Shown: positions 15,221 to 51,800 of the stretch, one piece after another
Layout: every line of letters begins with the position of its first letter
Position numbering within the stretch: position 1 is the first letter of the stretch
Assembly: GCF_000315625.1 (NCBI RefSeq)
Contig: NW_005434610.1
Span: 297,698 to 361,697, forward strand
DNA from: Guillardia theta CCMP2712
Lineage: Eukaryota > Protista > Cryptophyta
Length of the DNA stretch: 64,000 nt
Direction: 5' to 3'
Translations under genes and position numbers: made by a program
Notes under the pieces: model-generated
What the model was told of the DNA's origin: nothing
Seen by the model: the letters and a program-made list of their open reading frames with translations, nothing else
The model's database searches: none

Positions 15221-18200
15221 TTAGATCAGCGATGTACTTTCTGACATGGGACCCCCTATCTCTCCCAAGTACTTCAGCGCCTCTACATGCTCCCCTTGGC
15301 TCGCCAAGAGCGCGCATGTCCTCCCGTCCTTGTCCGTCCGAGCAAATAGCTCCGAGCCCCCTACCTCCCTCAGATATCGAAGAGCCTCGACATGCCCTCC
15401 TTGGCTCGCCTCATGTGCGCATGTCGTCCCGTTGTTGTCCGACTTCGTCAGCAGCTCCCGGCCCCCTACCTCCTTCAAGTACCTCAGCACCTCTACATGC
15501 CCTCCCGCACTCGCCCAGTGCGCGCATGTTCTACCCTCGTTATCCGTTTGAGCAAGCAGCTCCGGGCCCCCTACCTCTCCCAAGTACCGTAGAGCCTCTA
15601 CATGCCCTGCCATGGTGATAAAGTGCGCGCATGTCCTCCCGTCCTTGTCCGTCTGCGCCAGCAGCTCCCGGCCCCCTACCTCCCCCAAGTAACGTAGAGC
15701 CGCTACATCCCACACTCCGCTCGCCATGTGCGCGCATGTCGTCCCGTCCTTGTCCGTCTGCGCCAGCAGCTCCCTGCCCCCTGCCTCCCCCAAGTACCGT
15801 AGAGCCGCTACATGCCCTCCCACGCTCGCCATGTGCGCGCATGTCGTCCCGTCCTTGTCTGTCTGCGCCAGCAGCTCCCGGCCCCCTACCTCCCCCAAGT
15901 ACCGTAGAGCCTCTACATGCCCTCCCACGCTCGCCCAGTGCGCGCATGTCGTCCCGTTGTTATCTGTCTGTATCAGAAGCTCCCGGCCCCCTGCCTCCTT
16001 CAGATACCGTAGAGCCTCTACATGCCCTCCTCCACTTGCCATGTGCGCGCATGTCATGCCGTTGTTGTCCGTTTGCGCAAGCAGCTCCGGGCCCCCTACC
16101 TCCCCCAAGTACCTCAGCGCCTCGACATGGCCCCCTTGGCTCGCCAAGAGCGAGCATGTCCAGCTGTCGTTGTCTGTTTGCGACAGTAGCTCCCGGCCCC
16201 CTACTTCCCCCAAGTACCTCAGCGCTTCTACATGCCCCCCTTGGCTTGCCGCATGCGCGCATGTCGTCCCGTTGCTGTCGGGCTGAGCCAGCAGCTCCGG
16301 CCCCCCTACCTCTTCCAAGTACCTCAGCGCCTCTACATCTCCTGCTGCGCTTGCCGCATGCGCGCAGGTCCTCCCGTCGTTGTCTGTCTGCGCCAGCAGC
16401 TCCCGGCCCCCTACCTCCCCCAAGTACCTCAGCGCTTCTACATGCCCTCCTTGGCTCGCCTCATGTGCGCATGTTCTCCCCTCGTTGTCGGGCTGCGCCA
16501 GCAGCTCCCTGCCCCCTGCCTCCCCTAGATACCGTAGAGCCTCTACATGCCCTCCCTCGCCCGCCGCATGCGCGCAGGTCCTCCCGTCGTTGTCTGTCTG
16601 TGCAAGCAGCTCCGGGCCCCCTACCTCCCCCAAGTACCTCAGCGCCTCTACATGCCCCCCTTGGCTTGCCTCGTGTGCACATGTTATGCCCTCGTTGTCA
16701 GGCTGCGCCAATAGCTCTGAGCCCCCTACCTCCCCCAAGTACCGTAGAGCCTCTACATGGCCCCCTTGGCTCGCCGAGTGCGCGCATGTCGTCCCGTTGT
16801 TGTCAGGCTGAGCGAGTAGCTCCGGGCCCCCTACCTCCTTCAGATACCTCAGCGCCTCTACATGCCCTCCTCCACTCGCCGAGTGCGCGCATGTCCTCCC
16901 GTTGTTGTCTGGTTGTGCAAGCAGCTCCCTCCCGCCTACCTCTCCCAGATACCGTAGCGCCGCGACATGCCCTCCTCTACTCGCCGCATGCGCGCTTGTG
17001 TTTCCATTACAGTTTCCGGCCGACAAATTGGCGTCAAGTCTGATCAGAACTTCCATGCAATGTATGTATCCTTGTCGAGCTGCCACGTGTAATGGCGTGT
17101 CTCCGTTGCTCAAGGTCTCCGTCACTTTCCCTCCTGCCCGGCAGATCATCGGGATCATGTCTGCCTGCCCTTTCCTCACGGCAGTGAAGATCGGAGACTC
17201 CACCTCCGAGTCTTGTTGACCTCGCCAGATCCCTTGCATCTTGCAGAACTGCTCCGCAAGCCTCCGCCCGTCTTGTTCACTTGGATCGCTCTGAGCTCTG
17301 CAATGCAAATCTGATATCTTCCTCATGTACAGATCTTTCATCTTCTCTGCTGCTAGAGCATCACACATGAAGTCTCCGGTACCATCAAGCCAGTAGTTTA
17401 TCTTGTTCATCGCCATCTCCTTCAGTCTTGTCGCTTCTCCCATGGCTTGTACGTAGTTGTCGTCGTCATTGTACCAAGCCTCGGCTCGCTCCTTGTATCC
17501 CCTTACGACTTCTTCACACTCTCGTTCGATAGACTCGTGCAGTCCATGATGACGATTCAACATTACATCTAATGGCGCGTTTGCCATCCTGTCTTTCACT
17601 CGCTGCGACTGCATCATATCCTCCAGGTCTCGCCCGATCTCTTCCTCCACGTTCTCCAGCAGCGCCATGAACAGCTGCTTCCGCTTCCCCAGAGTCTCCT
17701 CTATCGTCGAGCACGTCAAGTTCGCGTTGATCTTCAGCGGCACCACTTGCACCAGCATCCCGTCTATCTCTTCCACCCGCGGCTGCTTCATCACCTCCAG
17801 GTACGACAGCGGCGGATACAAGATCTCCTTCTCCTCGGGGTACTGCGACAGCAGCTCCACATCCGCTCCCCGGTCGATGGCCCCGCAGCTGATCTCGAAA
17901 AGCGTCGGCAGCGAGCCCTCCTTGGCGTACTGCAGCGCCACCTGCCTGTCTGTCGACGTGCTGAGCATCCCGTACTCCACCCCCCCTGACACCCCTCGCG
18001 CGTCCTCTTCCACGAACCTCGCCGGCATCCGCACGCCCTTGAGCCCCCGGTACACAACCCTCGACGAGGGCAGCCTCGTGGTCTTGGACAGCTTGATCAC
18101 CCCGCTCACAACGCAGTGGAGGGTCGTGACGTACTTGTTGACCTTGTGCGACTGCGGAAGTCGAAGAACCGCATTGTACTTGTAGTACATGGGGCCTGTC

Positions 18201-21200
18201 AATGTGTCTGTCAGCTCACGTCGCACGTTCAAAGCTCTAAAAGCGTCCCATGCTGTACCTGTGTAGAGCAGCAGCGCGACGACTTCCTCCTTCCTTAGCC
18301 CTGCTTCCTTGACTCGCTCCTCTGCCATCACGCACTCCACGTCGCGGATGCGTCTGTTTTCCTTCGAGAGCTGCTGCCGCATGCTCGGGTTTGTCACGGC
18401 CTCCCACTCACGTTTAGGGTTCGTGACCTCGTTGTGGTTGGGCGGAGTGAACGGCTCCTCCGAGTCCTTCCTATGGCAGTGCTCGTCCTCTAGCCCCTTC
18501 CATAGGTCTGTGCTGGGCAGCCCGATACGCTCGATGAGGCCCCCGTGAAACTCCTCCAGCCTCCCGAAGATAGCTTCCTCCCCTTCCTCCATTGAGAACT
18601 TCGCGTTCCCTCCCTCTGACCTCCTCCATGACCTGCTCGCCACTGCTACTCCTCCTCCTCTTGCTCCTCTCGCTCCTGTTGCTGTCGGTACCTGGACGCC
18701 TTCTAGCACGTCTGCTATGCGTCTACCGCACGCCTCTTTCGTCTCCCTCTCTAGCAGCCCTGACAAGGGAGAGCTCTGGCTGCCCCCACTGATCTGCTCT
18801 GCGATCCTCCGCAGCACTTTAGGACGAGCGAGCATGTCCTGCTTGCACGCGAGCTCCCACTCTCTCGCGATCTTTCTCTCGTACTCGTCGACACTACTGC
18901 ACGTCTCAGCAAGACGCATAAGGAGTTCGGCCGGCAGGTTAAGACCCCGGCAGAGCTCGCTCGCTTCCGCGTGACCTGCCGTCATGTCCGAGTCTTGGGA
19001 GTGATTGTGGTAGAAGACTTGAAGCGTGTCGCGCATGTCAGGAGGAAGCGTCCACCGACATAAGTCCAACGATGGCAAGTCCTCGCCTTCCTTCGCGTTG
19101 CCTGACTCCGGGATTGAAACTTTTTCAAGTTCATGCAGCAGCTGTAAATCGATCTCAACGTCTGTTTCAGCCTTTTCCGTTTGACTGCTCCCAGCTTCTT
19201 TCCCTTGTTTTCCTTCACTTTCAGTTCTCTCCTTCAGCTCGTCGATCTCATCCGACTGTTGTAGTGGTTGCTTTGCTTCTTGTCGCACCTCCCCTCCCTC
19301 GAGCCTTCCCACTACCATCCTCTTCTCGTGATGTAGCGTAGCTGCCTCTTCTTCCTCTGGCTTTCGCTTCTCCTGATTTTCTCTGTTGGCGGTCAGCAGG
19401 CTGTCTGGGGTAAGAGTCTCCTGCAGCGTTTTGTGATCATCCCCTTCATGTGCATGTCCATGCTCTATCTGATGCTCTATCGTTTCTTGTGCTGACGTCA
19501 TCATTTCTTCTTCACTGGCCTTCTTGTGCCGACGCTTCCTCCTTTCATCTAGAATATCCAATCCCACCTGCCCTGATAGGTCACACACTCATAGCTCACA
19601 GCAACACAATACATCCAGCCCTAGACTAGAAGAAGCCGAAGCTACAGACGAGTCACCGGTCGTCAGTCTTCTTCGCTTCTTGCTCTCACCTGCGCATGGC
19701 TTAAAGGATAGTCTGTTTCTCTAGTGTACCTCTACCTTCCTGCAAAAACGCCTCGAAGCTTCGAAAACCTCCAGGTCTCTCATACTCCTGCACCCGTCGG
19801 AAGCCGTTTCTCAGCTCTTCGCTCCAGTGCTCCTCGCACTCCATCCAGTCTGTCCTGTACCCGTCGCTCCTCACGACCCAGCCAGTGCTGCTGATCCATG
19901 TCCTCCAGCCCTCAAGCTCGTGTCTGTGTTTCCCTTGCTTGCTGTGATAGTACTCGAGTAGACAACAGTGCAAGAATACGCTGCTCAGCTTGGTCATCTT
20001 CAGCATCATGACATAGCTTCCGACCTCCACGGCTTTTTCCAGCACATAGAAGTAGAACGAAGGATACTGACCCTCTCCAGGCATTATCTCTTCTCGAAGA
20101 TGCTCCTCTATTTTATCCATCGCATCCTCCCATGATACCATCGAGTCAAAGCATCTATCGACCACCTTGCTCCAGATCTCCAATGCTTCATCTAGCTCAT
20201 CTGGGTCCGTTATCACTTTGCGTATTTCCTTGCTAATCGTGTATTCCAGAATTGCAATGAGCAGTTTGTCGTCAGATATGCTGCGACCTGTCTGATTTGC
20301 CTTCCATGCATCGAAGGACGGCGACGAGATCTTGTTTCGACCAATGTACTCCAGCACAAGCTCAACAAGCTCGGGCCCTACTAGGTTTTTGTTCACCTTT
20401 GTCAGAAAATTCCCCAGCAGCCTCCGGGTAGAGAACCTCGTGTCTTCATATCGCAGGAAGTACATCAGAACGATTGAGCACACCCTCCACCGCGGACTAT
20501 CCGCTCGCTGCTCTCTAAGGAAATACTTCACCGCCTTGATGGTCCTTTCTCTGAAAGACTTGGCGTCTTCAGGGCTGTAAGCCAACACATAAGTATCCGC
20601 CTTTGACGTGTCTGTATGGGTAGGAGTGCTTGATGCCAAGTCCTTCGCAGCTTGAAGCAGCCCAGCTGTACTGCTCTTGATGTCTCTCAAGGGCTCGCCA
20701 TCTCTCACCAGGTAGAAACCATCCGGGATGGCTTGGATTTGCATAAAAACACAAGGTTGTTTCCCTTCACAACTTCTTGCACAAGATAGCAAAACATTGT
20801 CAAGAGGCCTATTGCAAGCAAACATCCCCAAGTCAGGATCGAGGAGCGACTGAAACAAGATTGAGTCATCGCTTGCTGTCTTGCCCTTGCCGCATGTCAG
20901 CAAGAGAGTCCAATGCTCAGGAAGCGCTTTCACTTCCGGATCCTGCGGCACACCCTCTTTCACTCCCTCGATCTTGTCTCGACACGCGTCAATCACAACG
21001 AGCACCCTCGGATGAAACGTAGATATATCTCGTTCAAAGTCCCTGAAGACCTTGAAAACCTCCTTCAAGGACAGCATCTCATCATGTATCTGGCGATAAG
21101 ATAACCCTCTCACTTCCTCAACCTCCGTTGGTACCAACATCTGGTCATGGCTCACCGGCTCATAGAGCCCATGTCCCGCATAGAAGAAGATCAACAGCTC

Positions 21201-21464
21201 CGGACACGCTTGCTCGAGCTGTTTGAGACTCCTCCTCAAGTACTTCTTCATGTCAGACGGATTCCTGGGGTTTGAGCTCAACACAGAGTGTGACTGCGGG
21301 AGTGAGCAGAGCTTGTCATGCAGCTCCTTCGCATCCTGCACGGCCTTCGCAAGCGGCTTGAGCTCACCCTGGTAGTCGTTGAGCCCCATGCACAGCCCGT
21401 ACACCCGAGGATGCTCCAGGAAGATCAAGTCTGCCTCGAATCTCCGCTCCGTCCGACTATCCAC
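15221..21464 (-). CDS. Multidomain protein: caspase-family peptidase C14 domain + R-S-E mono-ADP-ribosyltransferase + ankyrin repeat array
   Basis: ORF 19701-21464 has GLCMGLNDY...L..AVQDA...FFYAGHG (His 21171-21173)...VIDACRD (Cys 20982-20984). ORF 15221-19588 has LYTG/PMY..YN.VLR, YRG (18044-18052), STS (17954-17962), SQYPEEKEIL (E-K-E at 17825-17833), then about 19 ankyrin repeats. GT-AG introns 19735-19690 (46 nt) and 19612-19568 (45 nt) join the two ORFs in frame. A 63-nt intron at 18258-18196 restores LYTGPMY. Confidence 0.8.
15250..17000 (-). repeat. Coding tandem repeat, 17 units of 105 nt (35-aa ankyrin repeats)
   Basis: Consensus TCAHxASxGGHVEALRYLGEVGGxELLAQxDxxGx, with high nucleotide identity between units. 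Confidence 0.95.
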
Positions 21465-21566
21465 GAAGCTCTGGGAGCGATACCTCGACTGACCTGACAG
21501 AGCGCTAGCAACATCTCAAGTCACTTCCATGCTCTCCTCTCAAACCCTCTTCATCAGTCTATGCCT

Positions 21567-22166
21567 CTACCTGTTTCGCTTGGAGAAGCTTTCGTCGGCT
21601 CTCCCTCCCTCAAGAGCAAGCTCCATGACGCACTTGACTTGCTCCCGTGCGTGCTCGTCTTCATCGCCTCCTCCCTCACCAAACAAGACGGCATCATCGG
21701 ACTTTCGTATCTCTTGTCTCATGTTGCTGTGAGGGCTTGTCATTCGTCTCCTCTCCACCGCTTTCATCCTAGCACAAGTCAAGCTCCGGCCTTTCGCCCG
21801 GCCTGAGGCAGCCTCGTCCTCGCTACGATCTCCCCACCTCTCTGAGGTCATGACGTGTAGGCAGAGCTCGTCTTCCGGCCGCTCCTCCTCTCTGAAGCAG
21901 AAGAGCCGCTGCAGGAATGAGTCTTGGCCCTCCAGGTCGATGATGCTGATGAGGCGGATGCTCTTTCGTTCCATGCCCGTAGAGAGCTTGTCTAGTAAGC
22001 GCTCGCTCGGAGAGACGGAACTGCTGCTCCATGCTTGGATGTCTGAGAAGTTGTTGACAAGAGAATCAAACCTCTTCTGCACGTACTCCTGCATTCGACT
22101 TTTCTTTCTTCCCCTCTGTACAGTTGTTATCCTACTTTCCTTCTTCTTCTTCTGCCTTCTTCCCAC
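21567..22166 (-). CDS. Hypothetical exon(s), probably the 5' part of the caspase-ART-ankyrin gene
   Basis: Same strand and about 100 bp upstream, with a GTAGAG donor near 21570 and a TGTCAG acceptor near 21494. I could not resolve the exon phase. Confidence 0.4.
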   Translation of the reverse strand: MGRRQKKKKESRITTVQRGRKKSRMQEYVQKRFDSLVNNFSDIQAWSSSSVSPSERLLDKLSTGMERKSIRLISIIDLEGQDSFLQRLFCFREEERPEDELCLHVMTSERWGDRSEDEAASGRAKGRSLTCARMKAVERRRMTSPHSNMRQEIRKSDDAVLFGEGGGDEDEHAREQVKCVMELALEGGRADESFSKRNR

Positions 22167-22469
22167 CTGAGAGGGGAGAGAGGAGCATCCTCCCTATCAT
22201 CCTTCACCTGTTGCTTTCCTCTCCTCTCTCTCCGCTCTCTCGCCTCCCTCCTCTCCCTATCCTCTCGCCTCCCCTCCCCTCCCCTCTCCTTCGCTCCCAG
22301 CTACTCTGCGCTTTGCTGTCCTGCAGGCACTAGCCAGGCCATCCTGGTGTCCAAGTTGCTGTCTTCAGATATTTATTATTCATTTCCCGAGGCGAGCTCA
22401 GTACACTATCACTCGAGTGTACTGACCGGCCATGATAACTGATTTCTTGCTACTACTTCATTCATTCAT

Positions 22470-22831: not shown

Positions 22832-24370
22832 TCAATCGTATCGCTCCTCTGAACAAGTTTCCTGCTCAGGAGTTTCTCCACAGCAGCACATGTTTCTTGG
22901 AGCATCAGACCAAACTATCAACGTGAAGAACAGGTACTCGTCTTCCTTCCTGATGGCAGGACGGCCTGAGGCGTCTGACCTTGCCCAATCGAGTACCAAG
23001 TTATCTAAGAGAAATTTCGTGAACTTGCAGCATCCCATGCCTACCAAGAGGAAGTAGACGGGTGCGAGCAGCATGCTGTAGATATATGATGATAAATTTC
23101 CAATGAAGTAATTGATGATGTACTGGATCAGCAACGTCTCGACCAGAGTTTTCGTCTCTGTTGTGCAGCGGCAATTGTCAAGTTCAGCTGCAAAGCTAGG
23201 GGCCCGATCCACAAGACATCCGAACTGTAGCAATGTCGAGCAATTTTGATTGTTGATGAGCGTAGGCTTTGTCGTGGCACTGTTCCATGTCGCAGTCATG
23301 CAAGTTAAGCGTCCAGCTCCTGGCTGACCCCCAGCTGCCCAGGCGTTTAGCCCAAAGGTCGCGATGCCAAAGCGGGGAAGATGCTGATTCATGATCTTGG
23401 TAGCCATCTGGTACTCAGAGCTTTGGTTGTAGAGGGGCAGGCGACCTCCCAGCTTCGCGCAGAAGTTCGCAGCTTCCATCTGAGTTTTTGATTCACACAC
23501 GAAGATGATGGTGCCTTTGGAAGACCCAGCTGGAGCGAGCATCTGACTCGACATGGCCTGCGCAACTAGTTGGGGCTGAGAGAACACATATTGTTTGCAA
23601 TAAAATGCATCTGCGATAAAGGTCACTCCAAAGAAGCATGAGATCGCCCACAGAGCAACCGCCAGCAAGTTTCCGCTCTTCCTCAGACATCGCATACAGC
23701 ATCCCCCTTCGTCTGCCTTCGCTTTGAAGATCCTCTTCAAGAGCTCGGTCAGCATGAGAGCCTTGAGAATTGGGTTCAACAACGCGCCCATCATTTTCTT
23801 GGCGTACCACTCGGTTGGCAATTGGACCGTCATCAGAAACGCGGAATTGGTCAGAGAAACCAGGACTACATTGACCAGAACCATTAATCGTTCCCTCCTA
23901 GAGTACGCGTCGCACACCTCAGGGCGAGCAAAGAAAGGAGAGTACTCGTCGCTATCCTGTAAGTGACGGTGAATTCCCCTTAAGATGTTGATCGGGCTGT
24001 AAAACTGCCCTAGGAAGGTGCACAGTCCTATTGGACGCTCGTCGTCAGCATTGCTGTAGCTGGACATCCCTCCTGCCTCCTTCTGGAACTTTGAATTTTG
24101 TGAGATGCTGTTCGCCCGTTGTGACTTGAACGAGTTCATCTCTTGCTCCTGGGGTAGGTCCTGGGGAAAGTCCTGGGGCAGGTCCTCAGGAAAGTCCGTG
24201 GGCTGCCGTTGAATCCATGAATTATCAACATGATGGTTCGCAGAGTAGCCCATCACGAGCTCAGAACCACCATCCTGACAATACAACGACATCTCTTGCT
24301 CGATATCTGCTGAGTATTGTGGTACAACCCTTGAGGATCTCTTATTCTGTGACGTGTGATGTGGAAACAT
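22832..24370 (-). CDS. Multi-pass membrane protein with an extracellular C-type-lectin-like domain
   Basis: Hydrophobic segments (LMVLVNVVLVSL, LLAVALWAISCFFGVTFIA, YIYSMLLAPVYFLLVG). CTLD-like pattern CESKTQMEAANFCAKLGGRLP...WAAG...C...W...C...F.C. Confidence 0.55.
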   Translation of the reverse strand: MFPHHTSQNKRSSRVVPQYSADIEQEMSLYCQDGGSELVMGYSANHHVDNSWIQRQPTDFPEDLPQDFPQDLPQEQEMNSFKSQRANSISQNSKFQKEAGGMSSYSNADDERPIGLCTFLGQFYSPINILRGIHRHLQDSDEYSPFFARPEVCDAYSRRERLMVLVNVVLVSLTNSAFLMTVQLPTEWYAKKMMGALLNPILKALMLTELLKRIFKAKADEGGCCMRCLRKSGNLLAVALWAISCFFGVTFIADAFYCKQYVFSQPQLVAQAMSSQMLAPAGSSKGTIIFVCESKTQMEAANFCAKLGGRLPLYNQSSEYQMATKIMNQHLPRFGIATFGLNAWAAGGQPGAGRLTCMTATWNSATTKPTLINNQNCSTLLQFGCLVDRAPSFAAELDNCRCTTETKTLVETLLIQYIINYFIGNLSSYIYSMLLAPVYFLLVGMGCCKFTKFLLDNLVLDWARSDASGRPAIRKEDEYLFFTLIVWSDAPRNMCCCGETPEQETCSEERYD

Positions 24371-24894
24371 CGCAAGATTCAGTAGAAAGATGGTGATGTG
24401 CCGATATTCCTCCTGCTCGATAGATTTGTGCACTGCAAGGTTCAGCTGGCGGGGTACTACCCTACAACTTAACTCTTGCGAGAAGGCCAAGCAGGGGGCC
24501 CAATGATCACCCAGTCCGTGGTTAAAATGACCCTACCCTCTCATGATGTCTTTTTTACGAGTCTGTACCGGTCAAGTTACCTCAGTGGGGTCGCCTACTA
24601 CTACCCTACCGGAGGCTGGCTGCACTGCTGAATGTCGCTGCTAGGCTACCGTACCGATCTGCCCGGCTCACCCCCGGGAGCCTCGGAGTCCCCACCTGGA
24701 TTAGACCAGGGGGGGGCACGGTGGGTGGGTACGGTAGTATCTTTATTTGTGCAGGGGCCTGGGGGCCGCGACGTGTAGTAACGAGCGCCGTGAGGAGTCA
24801 CGGCGACCGTCCGACAACTTTTACAGAACAAGAATAAGGTATCAGTTAAGTTTGGGGGACTCCGGGACAGCAGTTGGCAGGATTAGGTTTGGTT

Positions 24895-40100: not shown

Positions 40101-43100
40101 TCATCTGGCCGATGATGACTCCTTCCTGAACGATAAATGCACGGAGGGGCTTGCAGGAGCATACAGCTCTCCTGCTACCGACAGACTGTCGTTCGTCTCA
40201 CAGTCGGAGGAGTACTGCAACCTTGATCGCAGGAGGAAGCCTTCTTCGCCTTCCTCCCTCGCTCCAGCTTCTGCCTCTCGCAATTCCTGTGCCTTGCAAA
40301 TCTTCTCGATGTCTTCGATCAGATCGTCGATCGCGTCCGACGTCCGCATTCTGGCGTAACAGCTCTCTGCTCTGCGGATCAAGAAGCCGGCTGCTCTGCT
40401 GGGACTGTTCGAAACTTGCACGGCAGAAAAGGAGGAAAGTTGCAGTTTCCAAACATCGAAGAATGGACGGAGATCGTCTTTCACGGGGCCAGTATCGTTC
40501 CATACTGTCGGCCTTGCCAGATTCTGTTCCTGAACCCTCGGTAACAGCCAACAGAAAGTTTTCATCTTGGAGAAGTAGGTGAACAGAAGCCCTTTGTAAA
40601 CGTATTCTTCAATGATGGAACGATTCTGGTGTGAAAGCAAAAACGTCAGAAAGCATTGGTAGCAGTGAAGTACAAACCTTTGAAGTCTTGCAGAAGATGC
40701 CCCACGCGTAAAAACACAATCGGATGGATGCAAGAACATGTGCTCGCTCCATTCGATTCAATTTGAAGTTGAAAAATTTGTTTCTCAAGAAGAGTTCTTG
40801 TAAAACTCTTGAATCCTGATTCGAACTTTGTGACAGAACAAGATACCGAGCCTGTGGAGCTATAGTAAGATCAGTGTCATTGCAGGGATAGTCTTGCACA
40901 ACTGTTTCAATGATATTACACATTTCCTTCAACTCCATCACTTCATCCAAAAACCGCACGATGCTTGTTTGCATTCTTAAACTTTCAGAGTTTTTACAAT
41001 CTCTTAAACGTTCGTATTGATCCTGATAGTACTCGAGTTCTGTCTCAGCGGCTTGTTTGAGGATTTGTTCTTGATTCAAACTGTAGCTCAAACGACCATG
41101 ATCCTGTTTCATTCTGTAGAGCTTGGAAGATGCCTTCAACCTTTTGATCATAAAATGTCTCACTTCACCATATAACCTTTTACGGAACAGAACAGAAAAC
41201 ATCCATTTCCATGACAACTGGCTGCGCTTGTGTCTTTCTAATTCGATCCTGGACTTGAGATCATGATTCTGAATTGCCTCTTGATGTTCTTGATGTAGAT
41301 CGGTCAAGATATCTTGGTAGATTCCAAGAATATTGGAACATTCATGCAATATCATATTGCACATTGTTGCAACCTGCAGATTTTTTTGTTTCATCTGTTT
41401 TGAAACAATGCACATTGTATCAGTTGATGAATCCAACAAGCCAAAGCAGCCAAGCAAGATATCTTCATGCAGGCTGTCAGTAATCTTCTGAAATTGTAGG
41501 AGGTCGCTTGTGGTATTAAGGATGAAATCTTTCAAAAGAGAGATTCCCCTCATTTGCAAAACTTTTTGACGCTGCAATTCTGCCTTGCTGCCTTCATAAT
41601 CTTTGCTCAGCCTTTCAACTTCCATTCCCCTGTCACCGAGTTCTCTTATCAAAGTGGCAATCTGAGCTCCTTTCCATAATTCTTTGACCGCAAAATCAGC
41701 CTTAGCCGTAGTCACCGAAGAGCTACAACGTTCTTCTGTCCACCGCAATTTATCAGTCAGAGCAATCACTTGACCCTGCAGGTCGTGGATCATCCTGGTC
41801 TTCTCTTCGTCTTCGAGCAAGATGTATGGGATTTCCATGAGAGTCTCATCCAGAATTGATGCAATGTAAACAACTGGTTCAATGGTGGATAGAACGTAAT
41901 TTTCTTTCTCTTGCTGAAATCCACATCTCGTCTGATAAAACAACAAGCACAAGTCAGACATCGTGAGCTGCATCTTGTCACAATACGACTCAAGTAGAGA
42001 TATAGCGCTTTTGCTCTGACGATCTTGAGTTGCCCACGTTTCACGCTCTGCCATTAGTTCATCATTCAATTTCTTCTGACTGCAGTAGGAGGCTTCCGAA
42101 GTTGAATGAGCTACAGACAGTAGTCTCGAGTTCTGATAGATTTCTTCGATCATGCCGCTTGTTTCCATGGTGCAGTCTGATACCTCTGTCATCAAGGCTG
42201 ACAGATCGTTTATCAGACGCGTTGACAAGACCGATGCCATAGCTAAGTTCTGCTCAAACAAGTGGATTGTTTCCTCCTGGACCTCACTCTTTGTAAACGA
42301 ACCGTTCAAATCGGCTTCAAGTTTGATAACATCAAAACTCAAATGAGCCACCTTCTGCTTGAGATGCTCTGCATACTCCTCCAGGTCCACCTGAGTAGCA
42401 GCACAATGAGATATTTGACTGAGACAGTTCTCCACGTGTACAGCTGCTATCGCGCACTGCGATGTATGCCTCTCCATCAGCCTCTCGTACTCCACCAGCT
42501 GTTGCCGACCAGCCTCAAGATCGGCAATGCATGACTCCGTCGCGTCCACAGTCCGTCCTAGCCTCCCGAGCTCCTCCTCCACCCTCCGCATCTCCTCTCC
42601 TGCCGCGTCGAGATCCCCTCGCACCTCCTCGCTCGCCCTCGCTACCGCAGCCAGCTCGGCTAGCAGCTGCTGAGCCCCTGCCGCTGCCGCCGCCGCCATG
42701 TGGGTCACCTGCTGGTCGGCTTGGCTTGCTTGCGACGAGACCCTGCGGACCTCAAGCTCGAGCTCGCGTACCCGGTCTCGCTCAGCCTCTAGCTCAGCCC
42801 GCTGGCAAGCCTGGCTCTGCTCAGCCGAGGCAAGTAACGCCTCTACCTCCTGCCGCCGGGCCCTCTCGCGTTCCAAAGATTTTGTCATCTCCTTCATTGT
42901 TTCCTCAGAGGATTGGATGCTTTTGCTCAATTTCATTGTTATTCCCTCACTATTCTCAATGCTTTTTGAGCATTGTTTTGTGTATGCCATCATCGTATTG
43001 AATTCAAACAATATTGCCCTGTAGTCCTTTGTTTTTTGTTTGCAGTCTTCCTGTAAGAAATTAATTTTGAAATTGTTTGTGATCAGAATTTCATTCAAGC

Positions 43101-46100
43101 TCCTTAATTCCTTCATCACTGTTGTTACCTCATGCAAGAGCAATTCGATTTCATCTCGTACGATCTGTTGTTTAATCCCGAGCTCTTCAGTTTTCTTCTC
43201 GCCTTTCTCAATCAAAAGAAGACAATTGAAAATTTCCGTCTCTTGCGAAAGGCATTTTCTAGAGATCATTTCTAATTGCTGATTCAAGGTATCTTTGCTT
43301 GTTTTCAATGACAAAATGTACCCTTCGTAAATTTTGACCCATTTCAAAATATCTTTATACAAACCTGGAAAGGATTTGGAATACGGGAAAGCCTCTTGGT
43401 CCAAGACTTGATGTTCAATTTCTTCTGGGCAAAACAAGTGAATTTGGCCAATAGATCCTGTGAAAACTTGTTCGACAGAAAACAGAAAATTCAGCATATC
43501 ATTTTGTTTTGATCCTTCTTCTTGTTCTAGGTTTTCTAGCACAGAATGTATTTCTCTCTTGAGATACATTACCTCTGTCACAATCTGCCTTGTGAAGAAT
43601 CTGTATTGATCCACGTCCATGGATAATGTGATGGAATGATGTTCTGAATGTTTCAAAGTGAATTCCAAACTCTGAATTCGGGTTTCAAAAAAAGTGCATT
43701 TGTTGGCCAAAGATACATATTCATGACAAAATTCAGGGGAAATTCTGGGATACCGACGCCATTCTCGTTTGCGTAACAAAAAACGTAGGACTAAGTTGAC
43801 CCATTGTATTCTCCTGAACTGAGAACGCTTTTCTTCTAGAGCTGCGAGAAAGCCTTGATGATTGACAAGAGCTGATTGAGATGAAGTGTATGCATTTCGA
43901 TAAATCTGACATTCCTTGAACAAAGCATCAAGCTCTGACGAAACATCATGAGTTACACTGTGGTACACGTCATCCGTCGTGAGTAATTCTTCGGTCAACC
44001 TTTGAATCAACTCCATTACATTCATTCGCTCATTCTGATTCATCAAAAAGACTTCTTGAAATCGGCTATTTTCCTTTGCAAGCTCCTCAGCAAGAGTACG
44101 AGAAGACAAAGCCTTAGACCTCTCGTCTTCAACCGCTTGCTTGAGATACTCCGCATACTCCTCCAGGTCCACCTGAGTAGCAGCACAATGAGATATTTGA
44201 CTGAGACAGTTCTCCACGTGTACAGCTGCTATCGCGCACTGCGATGTATGCCTCTCCATCAGCCTCTCGTACTCCACCAGCTGTTGCCGACCAGCCTCAA
44301 GATCGGCAATGCATGACTCCGTCGCGTCCACAGTCCGTCCTAGCCTCCCGAGCTCCTCCTCCACCCTCCGCATCTCCTCTCCTGCCGCGTCGAGATCCCC
44401 TCGCACCTCCTCGCTCGCCCTCGCTACCGCAGCCAGCTCGGCTAGCAGCTGCTGAGCCCCTGACGCCGCCGCCGCCGCCATGTCGGTCACCTGCTGGTCG
44501 GCTTGGCTTGCTTGCGACGAGACCCTGCGGACCTCAAGCTCGAGCTCGCGTACCCGGTCTCGCTCAGCCTCTAGCTCAGCCCGCTGGCAAGCCTGGCTCT
44601 GCTCAGCCGAGGCAAGTAACGCCTCTACCTCCTGCCGCCGGGCCTTCTCCCTCTCGACCGTGAGCAAGATCCCCTCCGTACCCTGCGCCAGGGATGACTC
44701 CGTCGCGTCCACAGTCCGTCCTAGCCTCCCGAGCTCCTCCTCCACCCTCCGCATCTCCTCTCCTGCCGCGTCGAGATCCCCTCGCACCTCCTCGCTCGCC
44801 CTCGCTACCGCAGCCAGCTCGGCTAGCAGCTGCTGAGCCCCTGACGCCGCCGCCGCCGCCATGTGGGTCACCTGCTGGTCGGCTTGGCATGCTTGCGACG
44901 AGACCCTGCGGACCTCAAGCTCGAGCTCGCGTACCCGGTCTCGCTCAGCCTCTAGCTCAGCCCGCTGGCAAGCCTGGCTCTGCTCAGCCGAGGCAAGTAA
45001 CGCCTCTACCTCCTGCCGCCGGGCCTTCTCACTTGTAAAGGAATTTTTTTCATGTTGGATTTGAATCTGCGCTGCGTTCAAGCAGAGAAGGATCCTATTT
45101 GTGTCAGCAATTCCAATAATAAATGAAGCATTGAGGTTTACAAGCAATTTGTCCAGGTCTGAAACAATCTGATTTATCGTCCCTTCTACAGATTCGATCT
45201 GAATATCCCAGTTGCCTAACAATGATAGAAACTCCACCTCCCGAACAGAAAACAAATGAACTTGATCCTGGTTGTCAAACAGTTCTTTCAAGCAACATTC
45301 AAGATCCATTGACTGGGAGGAAAAATTCTCAACATAATGACAAAGAACAAACTCAACATCACGCCGCCGGGCCTTCTCCCTCTCGACCGTGAGCAAGATC
45401 CCCTCCGTACCCTGCGCCAGGGATGACTCCGTCGCGTCCACAGTCCGTCCTAGCCTCCCGAGCTCCTCCTCCACCCTCCGCATCTCCTCTCCTGCCGCGT
45501 CGAGACCCCCTCGCACCTCCTCGCTCGCCCTCGCTACCGCAGCCAGCTCGGCTAGCAGCTGCTGAGCCCCTGACGCTGCCGCCGCCGCCATGTGGGTCAC
45601 CTGCTGGTCGGCTTGGCTTGCTTGCGACGAGACCCTGCGGACCTCAAGCTCGAGCTCGCGTACCCGGTCTCGCTCAGCCTCTAGCTCAGCCCGCTGGCAA
45701 GCCTGGCTCTGCTCAGCCGAGGCAAGTAACGCCTCTACCTCCTGCCGCCGGGCCTTCTCCCTCTCGACCGTGAGCAAGATCCCCTCCGTACCCTGCGCCA
45801 GGGATGACTCCGTCGCGTCCACAGTCCGTCCTAGCCTCCCGAGCTCCTCCTCCACCCTCCGCATCTCCTCTCCTGCCGCGTCGAGATCCCCTCGCACCTC
45901 CTCGCTCGCCCTCGCTACCGCAGCCAGCTCGGCTAGCAGCTGCTGAGCCCCTGCCGCCGCCGCCGCCGCCATGTGGGTCACCTGCTGGTCGGCTTGGCTT
46001 GCTTGCGACGAGACCCTGCGGACCTCAAGCTCGAGCTCGCGTACCCGGTCTCGCTCAGCCTCTAGCTCAGCCCGCTGGCAAGCCTGGCTCTGCTCAGCCG

Positions 46101-47697
46101 ATGCAAGTAACGCCTCTACCTCCTGCCGCCGGGCCTTCTCCCTCTCGACCGTGAGCAAGATCCCCTCCGTACCCTGCGCCAGGGATGACTCCGTCGCGTC
46201 CACAGTCCGTCCTAGCCTCCCGAGCTCCTCCTCCACCCTCCGCATCTCCTCTCCTGCCGCGTCGAGATCCCCTCGCACCTCCTCGCTCGCCCTCGCTACC
46301 GCAGCCAGCTCGGCTAGCAGCTGCTGAGCCCCAGCCGCCGCCGCCGCCATGTGGGTCACCTGCTGGTCGGCTTGGCTTGCTTGCGACGAGACCCTGCGGA
46401 CCTCAAGCTCGAGCTCGCGTACCCGGTCTCGCTCAGCCTCTAGCTCAGCCCGCTGGCAAGCCTGGCTTTGTTCAATGTAACAGATTGTTTCTGCCAGTGT
46501 CCTTTGGCTTGGAGCAATGTTCAACAACTTTGAAATGTTTCCTTCAAGATTTCTCAATCCATCAATCAGAAGGCGATTTGTGGTTTCTGCGACCATTTGT
46601 ATTGCAATCAATGCATTGGTCGCTTGTTCCTCGTGTTCGGTTCTTTTTTGTAACTCAAATTCGTTCTTCCTCATACACATTTGGAGTTCTTCAATTTGAA
46701 TGCTTTGATTTTGGCAGTCAAAGATGCTTTTTTCATAATATACGGCCATTTGTTTTGTTTCAGAGTGTATGATCTGTAGGTCATGAATCATCAATGCAAT
46801 ATCTGAGCGGCTCATGGCTAACAGATAATTTGCTTCAGCATCGACTTTCAACATGTTTTGGTTTGAATTTCTGTTCAGATTCAATTTCATGGCATGTTTT
46901 CTGATGGCTTTTATCCGCAAATCATACATATTATTTCTGGGTCTCGCTGGATTTGTGTTGCTCAGCTGTGCGTTTGCATTGAGGGTTATTGGATCTTCGG
47001 GTAGAGTTTCGATTGATTCAGTCTGAATGGCACTGTGCCATGCAAAATAAACTCTTTTCGTTGAGTTCCAAAGAGCTCGTCGACGATAAGATTCTGAACG
47101 TAAGATTGTCAACCAAATGCTGTAATATCGCTTCTTGTGAATAGTGTCTCTGTCTTTTATACGCCCCTCCAGTAACTTAACGATTTGTCTTGAGTACCGC
47201 ATATGGCAAAGCAATCGAACAAAAAATATTTTGATAATTCCTTGATATACAAGTCGAGTTACAACTTGATTTGTCTTTCGAATCGATGTGGCGGCCTTGT
47301 GCCAAGCTCGTAGGCGAGAGCTGACTAAGATTTTATCTTTTGTTGACAAAACTCTGTCCTGTCTCGAAGAGAAATTACGAGAACTATGCCTTTGTTGAAA
47401 AAACTCATTTTGTATCGATGAAGAAACGTTGCTTTCAAAAATTGTCCTCATGTTTTCATAAAGTAATCGTTTGGTATGAATCGCCTTCTCCAAAATTTCG
47501 CGAGTCTGTTTGAGACATTTTTGATCATTAGACTTCTGTTCTTTGTGCAGAGCAGCTTCAAGAATAGATTTCCCATCTGTGACTAGCGACTTGAAATCTC
47601 TGCTCCTCCATAAATCACTCTGCGAGAATCTTTTCGGACTTTCTGTGCCCTTCGGACTTTCCATCTTGTTTCGCGACCCCGAAGCGCTCTGCAGCAT
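40101..47697 (-). CDS. Giant coiled-coil protein (more than 2400 aa) with internal near-identical 127-aa repeats
   Basis: 2362-aa ORF 40609-47697 plus 3' exons in ORF 40101-40739. Heptad-rich throughout. Confidence 0.75.
42356..46468 (-). repeat. Six copies of a GC-rich coding module of about 381 bp (3 tandem at 45362-46468, 2 tandem at 44137-45030, 1 at 42356-42866)
   Basis: EQSQACQRAELEAERDRVRELELEVRRVSS...VDATES is repeated almost base-for-base, with period 381 nt in the tandem blocks. Confidence 0.95.
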
Positions 47698-48874: not shown

Positions 48875-51800
48875 ATGCACCACTCTGTGAGAATAAGCTT
48901 GAGACATTTCATGCACGTCCGACTCAGATATTGGATATCGCTCTGGTTTTTCCTGTCAATTTGTGCAACTTCGTCATCCGAGATCACATCAACAGTGACA
49001 TGGAGTGCTCAAAATTTGAATACGTGCGCTGAATACCAGGTAAACCGCCTGGTCAATGCATCACCATGTTGATCGTTGAATTTGACAGGCGTCATCAACT
49101 GCATGCAAATGTTATTCGTTTGATGCATACTCAAATGCGTGTATAAGCTCTCCTCCAAGTCCTGCTCTAGTATCAAGTAGCACTGCTCAAACGCCAGTCG
49201 CCTGTACATCCAAGCCTTTCCAGTATCGCATTAACGACAAGCATGTATAACTCTTACTGTTACCGCAGGCAATTCGCATGCACAAGTGGCACCCTAAATG
49301 ATCCAAACTGCAATTGTCAGAGCACATGCCAACAGATCGATACAGGGTAACAAATAAACTTATGCCTACCCATTTCCCAGTTTTGAGAATGTTAACAGAT
49401 GGGGTGCTTCAGCTCAAAACAACGATGCACGCTGCATGTTTTCAATGTTGGCTTTAGAAGATACTTGGGTCTCACTCAACTTCAACTTTGAACTGAAAGA
49501 TGGGTAAATTTAACATTTTCATTTTGTTTGAGATTCTTACTCATGCATACCTTTTAGATCTGGCAACCCGATAGCAACATCTACCTCAGCTCAAAATGCA
49601 TTGTTGAAATGCCCAGACGGTTTGCAGCAGACGTTCAAAGTAACAATAAGGTCGTATTACGGAATGTTTGAACTTTACGGATTACGAGCTCTCTGCAAAT
49701 TTTCGACTCAGACTTGCACATATCAAGCTTCAGAGATTCAGAAATTGGTGTCATCTCTGCAAAGTGGTTCCATCCCTCAGATTTTGAACTTTAGCAAATA
49801 TTCTAACTATGAAGACATTGAGGTGCTTGGAACATATGAGGAAGTTTACAATTCAATCTCGAACATATTATATCGGTCAAATCTCAATCAAAATTCGTTG
49901 AGGCTGAAAAACAAATATTACAATCCCTTAGCGTCTCAGCAACGACCATATGAAGAACTTGAATATAAAATTTTGTCAACCAACTGTTCGAGCAATAACC
50001 TTGTATTGATTAACATATCGGTACTTGTAGGAATCGTGGACATTGATGATGCTCCAGCCATTGTGAATCCCAGTTCGACCTATACCACACCAAAAACATG
50101 TACATCAAATGATCTAACATACGAATGTAATTTTGGACAATTTTACGCATTTGAAGATTCATCTCAGATAACAAGAGTCGGTGGCTTTACGATCGCAGAT
50201 GTTGATTTGTTTGAAAGCTGCACTTCTGTCGACCAATTTTGTAATGCTTTGGATGTAAATGTGGAGACATACATTGGATTTATTTCGCTAAACTCTGTTT
50301 CGGGTCTGACGATATACCAGGATACTTCAACAAAGCAAGGATTTATAGGATCCATAACAGCTAGTCAGTTGGCGATAAATCCGATCCAATATCAAACAAG
50401 GTTGCAAGGACTTGGCCCAGGGGTCCAGATGACATATTACAATACACAGAACGGTCAGAATTCACAATTTGTAACTCTAAAAGTTTCTGACCAAGGATCC
50501 ACTGGGTTTACGGGAAATCCACAGACAACCTCCTCTTCGGTCAATGTAACGATAGTAGCGGTAAACAATGCACCAACGATCACGATAAATTTGTACAAAA
50601 ACCTTTTCAATGCCGTCGAAAACGTTCCAATACTGTTTACAGGAATCTTAATTCAAGATGTTGACGTCAGTGAAAAGTTAAATTCATCGTTGGCACACAA
50701 AACGTGGATGAAATCTCGCCAGGCTCAAACTACACTGAATCAACTCAAGCTGACTCTTCAATTCATTCATGGGACTGCGAAATTCCTTTATTCCAGAAAT
50801 CTAAGAATTATTCAAGCTCAAGGGATGGAGCTTCTCACTATCAAGCCCAATTTCTATGGTGACGATGTTTGTAGAACCTTGCCGATCTTATACAGCTTGC
50901 ATGATTTGACATCAAGTGGAGTGAAAACAATGGTGACATACGATAAAGTCTGTGCTTATTCGAATGCAGGGACTTCGCAGTGCTTGACAGGGCAAGAATT
51001 GACTTGCTCCTGTCTCATAGACAATTTCTGCAATTCAGAATCTTACATAACATTGTACTTGAATACGTCAAAGCAGCTGATGTTCACAGATTCATCTGGA
51101 TCGTTTCACAAATGGGGTGATGTACTTGCAGACATATTAGAGAACTCGAACAAGACGTGTGGGGGTCTTCCTTTCTTTGCTCATCCAAACGATTTCAGTT
51201 ATGGTATACCTTGCAAAGCGGATTCCGATTGCTATGCGGTTGAGGCATGCGTTCCTGGGCAAACTTGTCGATGCTGTGCCGATCTAGCAACAGTGTGCAC
51301 TTCGAACGCTGATTGTAATACTTTGAGCCCTGGATCTTTGTGCGGTTGCATGCGAGACAATCAAGGAACAGGTCTCTGTGGACAGTATTGCTTAGATGCT
51401 GGTCTGACAATGGGCTGTACCAGTAACATTGTACAAATTGGATCCGTGTTGCCACGATATTATGGGTCAAAGTGTAGCTATCGCGCACCGTTCCCGAACT
51501 CACTTCTGTATGGTTCCAACACACCAGAACTACGAAGCTGTCTGTCACCCTCATTTGTGGTCAATGGTTCTGTGCATGCCAACGCTCTGAATCTTGTCTC
51601 AGCTGAGGTTGCAACAGAAGGAAGCACCAAGGTATCGATCACAGCTGATCTTGTTGATATGCAAAGGGTTTTATCAAACATTCAATATACAACAATTCAA
51701 CACTTCAATCGTTTATGGCGACCTCCTGCTTCAAGTCAAGGACTGGACTTTGACCCTGCAGCAAACATATTTGACAGGATGACTGTGGAGGTTGAAGATT

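Follow-up and report, generated by a model that had tools for sequence, protein, structure and literature searches.

A Guillardia theta locus combining a paracaspase-like protease, an ADP-ribosyltransferase and ankyrin repeats belongs to a gene family with exchangeable C-termini

Introduction

Can a caspase-like protease, an ADP-ribosyltransferase (ART) and an array of ankyrin (Ank) repeats be carried by one protein of a cryptophyte alga, and, if so, what might such a protein do? The question is raised by a stretch of 64,000 nucleotides (nt) from Guillardia theta CCMP2712 (contig NW_005434610.1 of assembly GCF_000315625.1, positions 297,698 to 361,697; hereafter the window, in whose numbering all coordinates are given), in which two long open reading frames (ORFs) lie on the minus strand: ORF1, at 19701..21464 (587 amino acids, aa), and ORF2, at 15221..19588 (1455 aa). 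The original prediction, made from the letters alone, read the two as one gene for a caspase-family (C14) protease, an arginine-type ART and an ankyrin array, and saw in it an immune sensor and executioner. We are confident that the locus is one spliced, transcribed gene. Its architecture is a new one, assembled from known domain families within an undescribed gene family. With regard to function, the explanation that we favor is an expressed modular gene, in which an ART-Ank output unit is joined to a C14-bearing constant part, here called the chassis, and which serves conflict, immunity or stress-related death rather than housekeeping; we consider this explanation evenly balanced between right and wrong.

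Two reading frames are joined by splicing

Four public RNA and DNA runs were aligned to positions 17200-22400. Contigs of X1 (study P1) and X2 (study P2) run through 19030-19565, a 77-nt exon and 19734-19873 with 0 mismatches, omitting exactly 45 and 46 nt, and the ends of the omitted segments, CT..AC on the plus strand, are GT..AG on the strand of the gene. A contig of X4 (study P3) covers 19030-19873 in the unspliced, genomic form. The RNA thus bears out the introns that had been proposed around the exon 19613-19689, namely 19735..19690 (46 nt, GTAGAG..GCGCAG) and 19612..19568 (45 nt, GTATTG..GGGCAG). Their removal keeps the frame, which a manual reading and a later one by script both gave as ..FLQE-G-ESKKRRRLTTGDSSVASASSSLGLD-VGLDILDER.. 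and is free of stops. The complete four-exon coding sequence, 22094..15221 on the minus strand, has 6,717 nt or 2,238 codons and 0 internal stops.

Alternatively, C14 with the orphan domain that follows it (MID) and ART-Ank might belong to two independent genes, the joined RNA being read-through or a chimera from the assembly of paralogs. Programs that call ORFs, and one environmental gene call (P0086), do stop the first protein within the upstream intron, and Hanusia phi has C14-MID proteins of ~600 aa. However, identical contigs from two studies drop both GT-AG introns with the frame kept. Paralogs on contig C97 (with an in-frame 3-nt indel) and an environmental relative (L031) preserve the small exon together with the two splice sites and the frame, and four paralogs repeat the order exon 1, C14, MID, linker, ART, three of them with an ankyrin array. 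Moreover, no transcripts terminating between the ORFs were seen across 19735-19568, and no clustered molecule ends were found between ORF1 and ORF2 in the four runs, whose depth was low. Since spliced contigs join the ORFs, we reject the two-gene model, which is hardly credible.

The limits of the gene had been drawn too narrowly, because exon 1 (22094..21571) was missed and homology with annotated paralogs puts the start upstream. ORF1 has no ATG ahead of its first beta-strand. A frame at 22094..21571 terminates in ..FSKRN, followed by GTAGAG, and an exon-1 frame with the same ..KRN end stands ahead of every paralog (contigs C97, C6 and C52). Two annotated G. theta paralog models, P0178 (GUITHDRAFT_101222) and P0179 (GUITHDRAFT_111492), join KRN to ALS through a single S, and a 66-nt intron at 21570..21505 would give the identical KRN-S-ALS join here; its placement follows from this homology and not from reads. 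The N-termini also correspond, with MQDYLHKRF in P0179 and MQEYVQKRF in the studied gene, and a contig of X2 spans 21928-22253 in the region of exon 1. The gene model is as follows.

21571..22094, minus strand: exon 1; ATG at 22094..22092; 174 aa plus 2 nt, encoding an N-terminal domain of no known family
21505..21570, minus strand: intron 1 (predicted), 66 nt, GTAGAG..TGCTAG; frame kept; junction by paralog homology, no crossing read
19736..21504, minus strand: exon 2; C14 domain and orphan MID domain; open frame
19690..19735, minus strand: intron 2, 46 nt, GT..AG; removed in the X1 and X2 contigs, present in the X4 DNA contig
19613..19689, minus strand: exon 3 (micro-exon), 77 nt; encodes (G)ESKKRRRLTTGDSSVASASSSLGLD, with a basic cluster; in the spliced contigs
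19568..19612, minus strand: intron 3, 45 nt, GT..AG; removed exactly in the X1 and X2 contigs
15221..19567, minus strand: exon 4; linker, ART and ankyrin array; stop codon at 15223..15221; frame unbroken

In the RNA data the ART region is dominated by paralog contigs. A related observation concerns the beginning of ORF1: at 21441, 21459 and 21463 all X2 and X4 contigs read T>G, A>G and A>T, at 3-100x the depth of neighboring single-copy stretches. One of these changes gives a ..TERSF.. form, as in the C97 copies and in P0086, and the variant letters at 21441-21463 probably represent collapsed paralogs rather than the studied locus.

A caspase fold probably closest to that of MALT1

Pfam searches, catalytic residues and the spliced contigs agree that a caspase-like protease, an R-S-ExE ART and an ankyrin array are combined in one polypeptide, as had been proposed. 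Its parts downstream of the exon-1 domain are the following.

20700..21422, minus strand: C14 (paracaspase-like) domain, ORF1 aa 15-255; from Pfam, profile and structure model
19736..20699, minus strand: MID domain, ORF1 aa 256-577; alpha/beta, with no recognizable relative
18599..19567, minus strand: linker, with basic RRKRRHKK, an acidic low-complexity stretch (isoelectric point 4.6) and a small helical region; end of the constant module
17429..18601, minus strand: ART module, ORF2 aa 330-720; N-terminal extension and R-S-ExE core (Pfam core 18379..17783)
15224..17191, minus strand: ankyrin array of 19 repeats, 2 of canonical form and 17 in the form of 35-aa units

The C14 domain scores 34.6 bits against Peptidase_C14 (PF00656; cut-off 21.4), and the motifs originally pointed out were confirmed by coordinate: AGHG at 21179..21168 (His98, 21173..21171) and DACR at 20990..20979 (Cys161, 20984..20982). 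Among 37 aligned relatives the catalytic His is kept in 33 (2 are gapped) and the Cys in 32. A search of the PDB with the single C14 sequence gave no match, and MALT1 was reached only by a family profile built from the 37 relatives, which placed it first (E 2e-8). Metacaspases matched this profile more weakly (MCA2, 1.7e-4) and in the p20 part only (E 1.7e-4 to 0.6). In the profile alignment YAGHG and D-x-C-R fall on MALT1 His415 and Cys464. The AlphaFold2 model of the 587-aa ORF1 (predicted local distance difference test, pLDDT, 84.8) leads to the same protein, as the top Foldseek matches are MALT1 with probability 1.00. In a VIA comparison of the C14 model, MALT1 reached Z 19.6 (root-mean-square deviation 3.4, 207 residues aligned), caspase-9 Z 19.0, metacaspase-4 Z 16.3 and SAVED-CHAT Z 13.2, with 33 chains at Z of at least 8, and the structural match spans the whole p20 and p10-equivalent fold. 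MALT1 and caspase-9 are almost level by structure. We conclude that the domain has a caspase fold and an intact His/Cys dyad, and that its closest relative is probably the paracaspase MALT1.

Because Asp44 and Asp159, both conserved, align with the S1 aspartates Asp365 and Asp462 of MALT1 (MALT1 Glu500 lies outside the aligned stretch), the sequence predicts cleavage after Arg or Lys. Like human MALT1 (PDB 3v4o, 3uo8), the studied domain is an uncleaved single-chain p20 and p10-like unit within a large multidomain protein. However, sequence identity is ~15-18%, and the studied C14 domain is fused to MID, ART and ankyrin repeats and is not known to have partners of the CARD/BCL10 type. Pfam finds no death domain or Ig domains in the studied protein, and membership in the type-1 paracaspases was rejected on this ground.

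A group of C14 'metacaspase-like proteases' of G. theta and other algae, which have p20 motifs and fit neither type I, II nor III, was described by Choi & Berges 2013 (PMC3734836). That paper does not display the G. theta members and mentions ART and ankyrin 0 times. The studied C14 domain fits its description, yet the fold includes the p10-equivalent half. Among models of bacterial defence proteins, PADLOC 'caspase' and the EACC1-associated caspase of NCBIfam (33.5 against a cut-off of 140) also matched weakly.

An R-S-ExE ADP-ribosyltransferase with conserved catalytic residues

The ART module scores 34.2 bits against Pfam ART (PF01129; cut-off 22.3), and ADPrib_exo_Tox, at 22.1, falls just under its cut-off of 23.4. 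The three motifs on which the original prediction had relied were found at YRG 18052..18044 (Arg514, 18049..18047), STS 17962..17954 (Ser543, 17962..17960) and E-K-E 17833..17825 (Glu586, 17833..17831; Glu588, 17827..17825). Across 38 homologs there is no change at Arg514, Ser543 or Glu588, and the conservation of Glu586 reaches at least 90%. A profile built from 38 relatives found HopU1 first in the PDB (2.6e-9), then Vis, Tre1, Certhrax, ExoT/S and SpvB, and Y-R-G, S-T-(S/T) and E-x-E-I-L-x-P match in the alignment with HopU1, Vis and Tre1. By its sequence the module is an R-S-ExE mono-ADP-ribosyltransferase with intact catalytic residues. It shares its motifs with the known R-S-E arginine mono-ARTs (HopU1, Vis, Tre1, Certhrax, ExoS/T, SpvB, and the vertebrate ecto-ARTs of PF01129) and differs from them in belonging to a protein that is intracellular in the alga rather than secreted or injected, in having a conserved extension of ~75 aa before the Pfam core, and in its fusion to repeats and a protease. 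The stretch that contains this extension (18599-18380) precedes the core in all relatives, is an exon of its own in many paralogs, and has the consensus F-G-x-L..G-L-E..I-G-x-P..E-H-C..N-Y..T-T-S..E-W (alignment columns 1-110).

It might be argued that the enzymes are dead, or that the gene is a decaying copy in a churning cluster with no function of its own. Truncated and stop-carrying copies do occur in the C97 cluster, and expression is low. This idea is difficult to reconcile with a frame of 2,238 codons without a stop and with every catalytic residue kept. In addition, the ratio of non-synonymous to synonymous substitution rates (dN/dS) of the enzyme domains is 0.2-0.3: it amounts to 0.18-0.29 for the ART core and to 0.23-0.34 for C14 against the C97 copies. 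Since these values lie within 0.18-0.34, both enzyme domains are kept under purifying selection, and we judge decay to be highly improbable.

A hypervariable surface on the ankyrin array

Pfam recognizes the array strongly (Ank_4, 252.6 bits; Ank_2, 247.7 bits). Variability, measured as entropy per position, is concentrated at unit positions 1, 2, 4, 9 and 12, and the positions found variable here form the usual binding face of ankyrin repeats. The surface positions of the array are therefore hypervariable. Such arrays exemplify, in nature, an invariant scaffold whose binding positions vary, in the manner of DARPins.

A constant head and exchangeable tails

The gene, which the original prediction had treated without knowledge of paralogs, is one of many. 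Searches of the G. theta genome itself (87.1 Mb in 669 contigs) returned 34 matches to the C14-MID module and 114 exon-level matches to the ART module (N-terminal extension exon and catalytic exon), at more than 60 loci. Examples of ART loci are G000:C6:848563-849690, C428:4892-6055, several on C122, and others on C294 and C349.

A module-by-module map of 140-240 kb of contig C97 (G000:C97:140001-240000; L021-L030) revealed how these parts are combined. The four genes with the order exon 1, C14, MID, linker and ART, three with ankyrin arrays, are 65-91% identical to the studied gene, and the ART-bearing copies all keep YAGHG, IDACR, VVYRG, LSTS and YPEEKEILYPP. They alternate with two genes in which the shared linker gives way, at aa ~194, to a GTPase of dynamin-like type (Pfam Dynamin_N). 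With 99.7% identity between them, the GTPase tails of these two genes point to a recent segmental duplication, and truncated and stop-containing copies lie between the intact genes. Downstream of other paralogs, on the same strand, come two double-stranded RNA (dsRNA)-binding motifs (on C52) or a kinase with ARM repeats (on C51). The same head also stands at the N-terminus of two further proteins, one of 2,974 aa from G. theta and one of 2,764 aa with LRR, GTPase, SPRY and ankyrin parts.

The exchange of tails can be best illustrated by an ENA metagenome contig (L031:1-4867; ERZ930064), whose head is 93% identical to that of the studied gene and has the same micro-exon and both intron sequences. 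Past linker aa ~270, a sub-threshold CHAT-like stretch and a kinase of Tyr/Ser-Thr type stand in place of ART-Ank. To judge from this comparison, the two are a case of module swapping between near-identical genes. Our results thus describe a tandemly duplicating family specific to Guillardia and Hanusia, with a constant first ~1,050 aa (N-domain, C14, MID and linker) and an exchangeable C-terminus, the options being ART-Ank (the studied gene and at least 3 paralogs; a fourth has ART without Ank), dynamin-like GTPase, kinase, dsRNA-binding and LRR-GTPase.

Head and tail differ in their range. Beyond Guillardia, clear full-length relatives of the head were found only in Hanusia phi and environmental contigs. 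The protease-free cassette of ART and repeats is widespread in cryptophytes and haptophytes, with Ank, LRR, TPR, WD40, EF-hand, SPRY or kinase parts, and ART-Ank stands alone in dozens of G. theta genes. PF00656 is absent from all 85 ART relatives with lengths of 800-2,546 aa, and the exact C14-ART-Ank architecture was not found outside Guillardia. No public protein model matches ORF1 or ORF2 at 95% identity or more. The locus therefore seems to be unannotated or fragmented in public annotation, which makes the absence of a public architecture match weak evidence. A full-text search found no literature on the C14-ART-Ank architecture or on an ART expansion in cryptophytes; the earlier statement that no characterized protein with this architecture was known thus agrees with both the literature and the public protein models.

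The nearest foreign ART-Ank protein is P0002 of H. phi (1565 aa; ART 1028-1409, 59% identity). Its N-terminus of ~1,000 aa has no BLAST similarity to ORF1, with matches to CHAT and to a ResIII helicase below threshold, and it may represent a different design of protease, helicase, ART and Ank.

Orphan domains, the linker and the proposed release of the ART

The exon-1 domain has no match in Pfam, PADLOC, NCBIfam or Atlas, and its dN/dS against the paralogs is ~0.5. MID is conserved across the members of the family in G. theta and in H. phi (dN/dS 0.22-0.33; pLDDT of the model 75.8). Its best match among 48,161 PDB chains compared by VIA was Z 5.8, with no Ig-like or P-loop match, and Atlas gave no usable match by features and a best shape match of template-modelling score 0.31. 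This absence of a structural match does not prove a new fold, and we did not retain that interpretation for MID.

The linker is 80% identical to that of L031 up to ORF2 aa ~270, where the homology ends, and is common to the dynamin-type paralogs up to aa ~194; its dN/dS is 0.6-0.7. Two conserved basic clusters, KKRRR in the micro-exon (19613-19689) and RRKRRHKK (19520-19567), lie ~30 residues apart just before the acidic stretch. The pair could equally be a bipartite nuclear-localization signal.

These features bear on the mechanism originally put forward, by which a ligand of the ankyrin array, for example of a giant virus, leads C14 to autoproteolysis in the acidic linker and so frees a toxic arginine-ART that kills the cell in an abortive infection. 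The protease, ART and ankyrin parts are indeed present with their catalytic residues intact, the stretch between chassis and ART is disordered and fast-evolving, the family is conflict-like, and the nearest solved relatives of the ART are bacterial toxins and effectors. However, in the alignment the S1 pocket corresponds to the acidic one of Arg-specific MALT1, which makes cleavage at acidic residues unlikely and points to the Arg/Lys clusters instead. Given the predicted specificity, KKRRR and RRKRRHKK are plausibly better candidates for self-cleavage than the acidic stretch. Furthermore, the dynamin- and kinase-type paralogs have the same linker, so that it is not a release device specific to the ART, and dozens of ART-repeat genes in the genome have no protease. 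As for giant viruses, which entered the proposal as pure inference, no link to a virus was found, and one pattern scan of IMG/VR returned no ART relative. Taken together, we regard release of a toxic ART in this form as improbable.

Comparison with known systems

Family searches with Pfam, PADLOC and NCBIfam detected no NTPase, death-fold, TIR or signal peptide family in the protein. Because it has no NTPase, and in particular no NACHT or NB-ARC P-loop NTPase, the protein is not an NLR, and membership in NLR/STAND was rejected.

In tankyrase, clusters of ankyrin repeats recruit substrates to a PARP domain on the same chain. The studied protein resembles it in carrying an ankyrin array and an ADP-ribosyl-transferring domain in one chain, and differs in that the transferase is of the R-S-E rather than the H-Y-E (PARP) fold, that the order of the domains is reversed, and that it has no SAM domain, whereas tankyrase has no protease.

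The protein also recalls SAVED-CHAT and the prokaryotic conflict systems that combine caspase-like effectors with repeat sensors (Kaur et al. 2020, PMC7159879; 2021, PMC8195603). The likeness lies in an N-terminal caspase-like domain, in large proteins with super-structure-forming repeats and in the shuffling of modules within a family. The differences are that the studied protein has no STAND/NTPase core and no EACC1 domain, and that its gene is eukaryotic, nuclear and intron-containing.

Discussion

We speculate that the ART-Ank cassette is the output and targeting unit of the protein. Binding of a partner by the hypervariable ankyrin surface would either deliver this partner to the ART or relieve an inhibition of the ART, which could then mono-ADP-ribosylate arginine on the bound partner or on proteins of the host. 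The C14 chassis of ~1,050 aa would be a shared control and signaling or processing unit, Arg/Lys-specific by prediction. By analogy with MALT1 and the initiator caspases, C14 would probably be activated by induced proximity, and it might cut its own chain at the two basic clusters that are conserved between MID and the acidic linker.

What is such a design for? The alternative tails, the duplication in tandem and the narrow phylogenetic range lead us to favor an immune or conflict role over housekeeping, though tentatively, as we place its probability somewhat short of even. The immune-like reading gains circumstantially from the lineage-specific tandem family, from the swapped tails of innate-immunity type and from the hypervariable ankyrin surface. 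It would be tempting to go further and to infer an undescribed family of eukaryotic innate immunity, in which a caspase-headed chassis carries ART-ankyrin, dynamin/Mx-like GTPase, kinase or dsRNA-binding cassettes, and in which capture of a ligand by the ankyrins activates ART and proteolysis and stops the infection. In this full form the proposal is unlikely, though it deserves to be stated.

Several points weigh against the favored explanation as a whole. We infer the protease and ART activities, the cleavage, the ligand and the link to infection. The pairing of Ank with an ADP-ribosyltransferase is also that of tankyrase, which is regulatory rather than immune, and family searches over the whole protein revealed no NTPase switch, hence no control of NLR type. 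In the ankyrin array, dN/dS is 0.12 for scaffold codons and 1.4 for the five variable codons, the latter being positions picked post hoc by their variability. The tails of the other paralogs were assigned to the same transcript by adjacency and the conserved micro-exon, not by reads. Moreover, expression is low (contig depths of 6 and 31; 5 raw reads in the RNA run X9), and the RNA bridges only 19030-19873, no single record covering exon 1 to the ankyrin array.

The main competitor is a regulator with no part in immunity, in which the ankyrins recruit endogenous targets for reversible Arg-ADP-ribosylation in the manner of tankyrase, and the paracaspase module, like MALT1, acts in ordinary signaling as a scaffold or regulates by limited proteolysis. 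Ank with an ADP-ribosyltransferase is a known design for substrate recruitment; the closest structure, MALT1, is a signaling scaffold and not an executioner; all enzyme domains are under purifying selection; and the low expression is constitutive in ordinary cultures. However, the family is confined to Guillardia, Hanusia and environmental relatives, and its tandem duplication, pseudogene debris and swaps of C-termini between heads that are 93% identical would be unusual for housekeeping, as would a hypervariable ankyrin surface. We therefore see a purely regulatory role as doubtful, while giving it real weight.

The family matters because cell-autonomous immunity and regulated death are little known in non-plant algae, although viruses control algal blooms. 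In a model cryptophyte it offers a concrete and testable entry point, namely a caspase-type protease with interchangeable modules. If the family were regulatory instead, it would provide the first signaling pair of a paracaspase-like protease and an Arg-ART.

Neighboring genes in the window

Pfam searches of three large neighboring ORFs gave no sign of a shared system and returned weak matches (YchJ_M-like, ThrE, Cadherin_4) or nothing. These ORFs lie at 40609-47697 (minus strand; 2362 aa), 49601-54517 (plus strand; 1638 aa) and 22832-24490 (minus strand; 552 aa).

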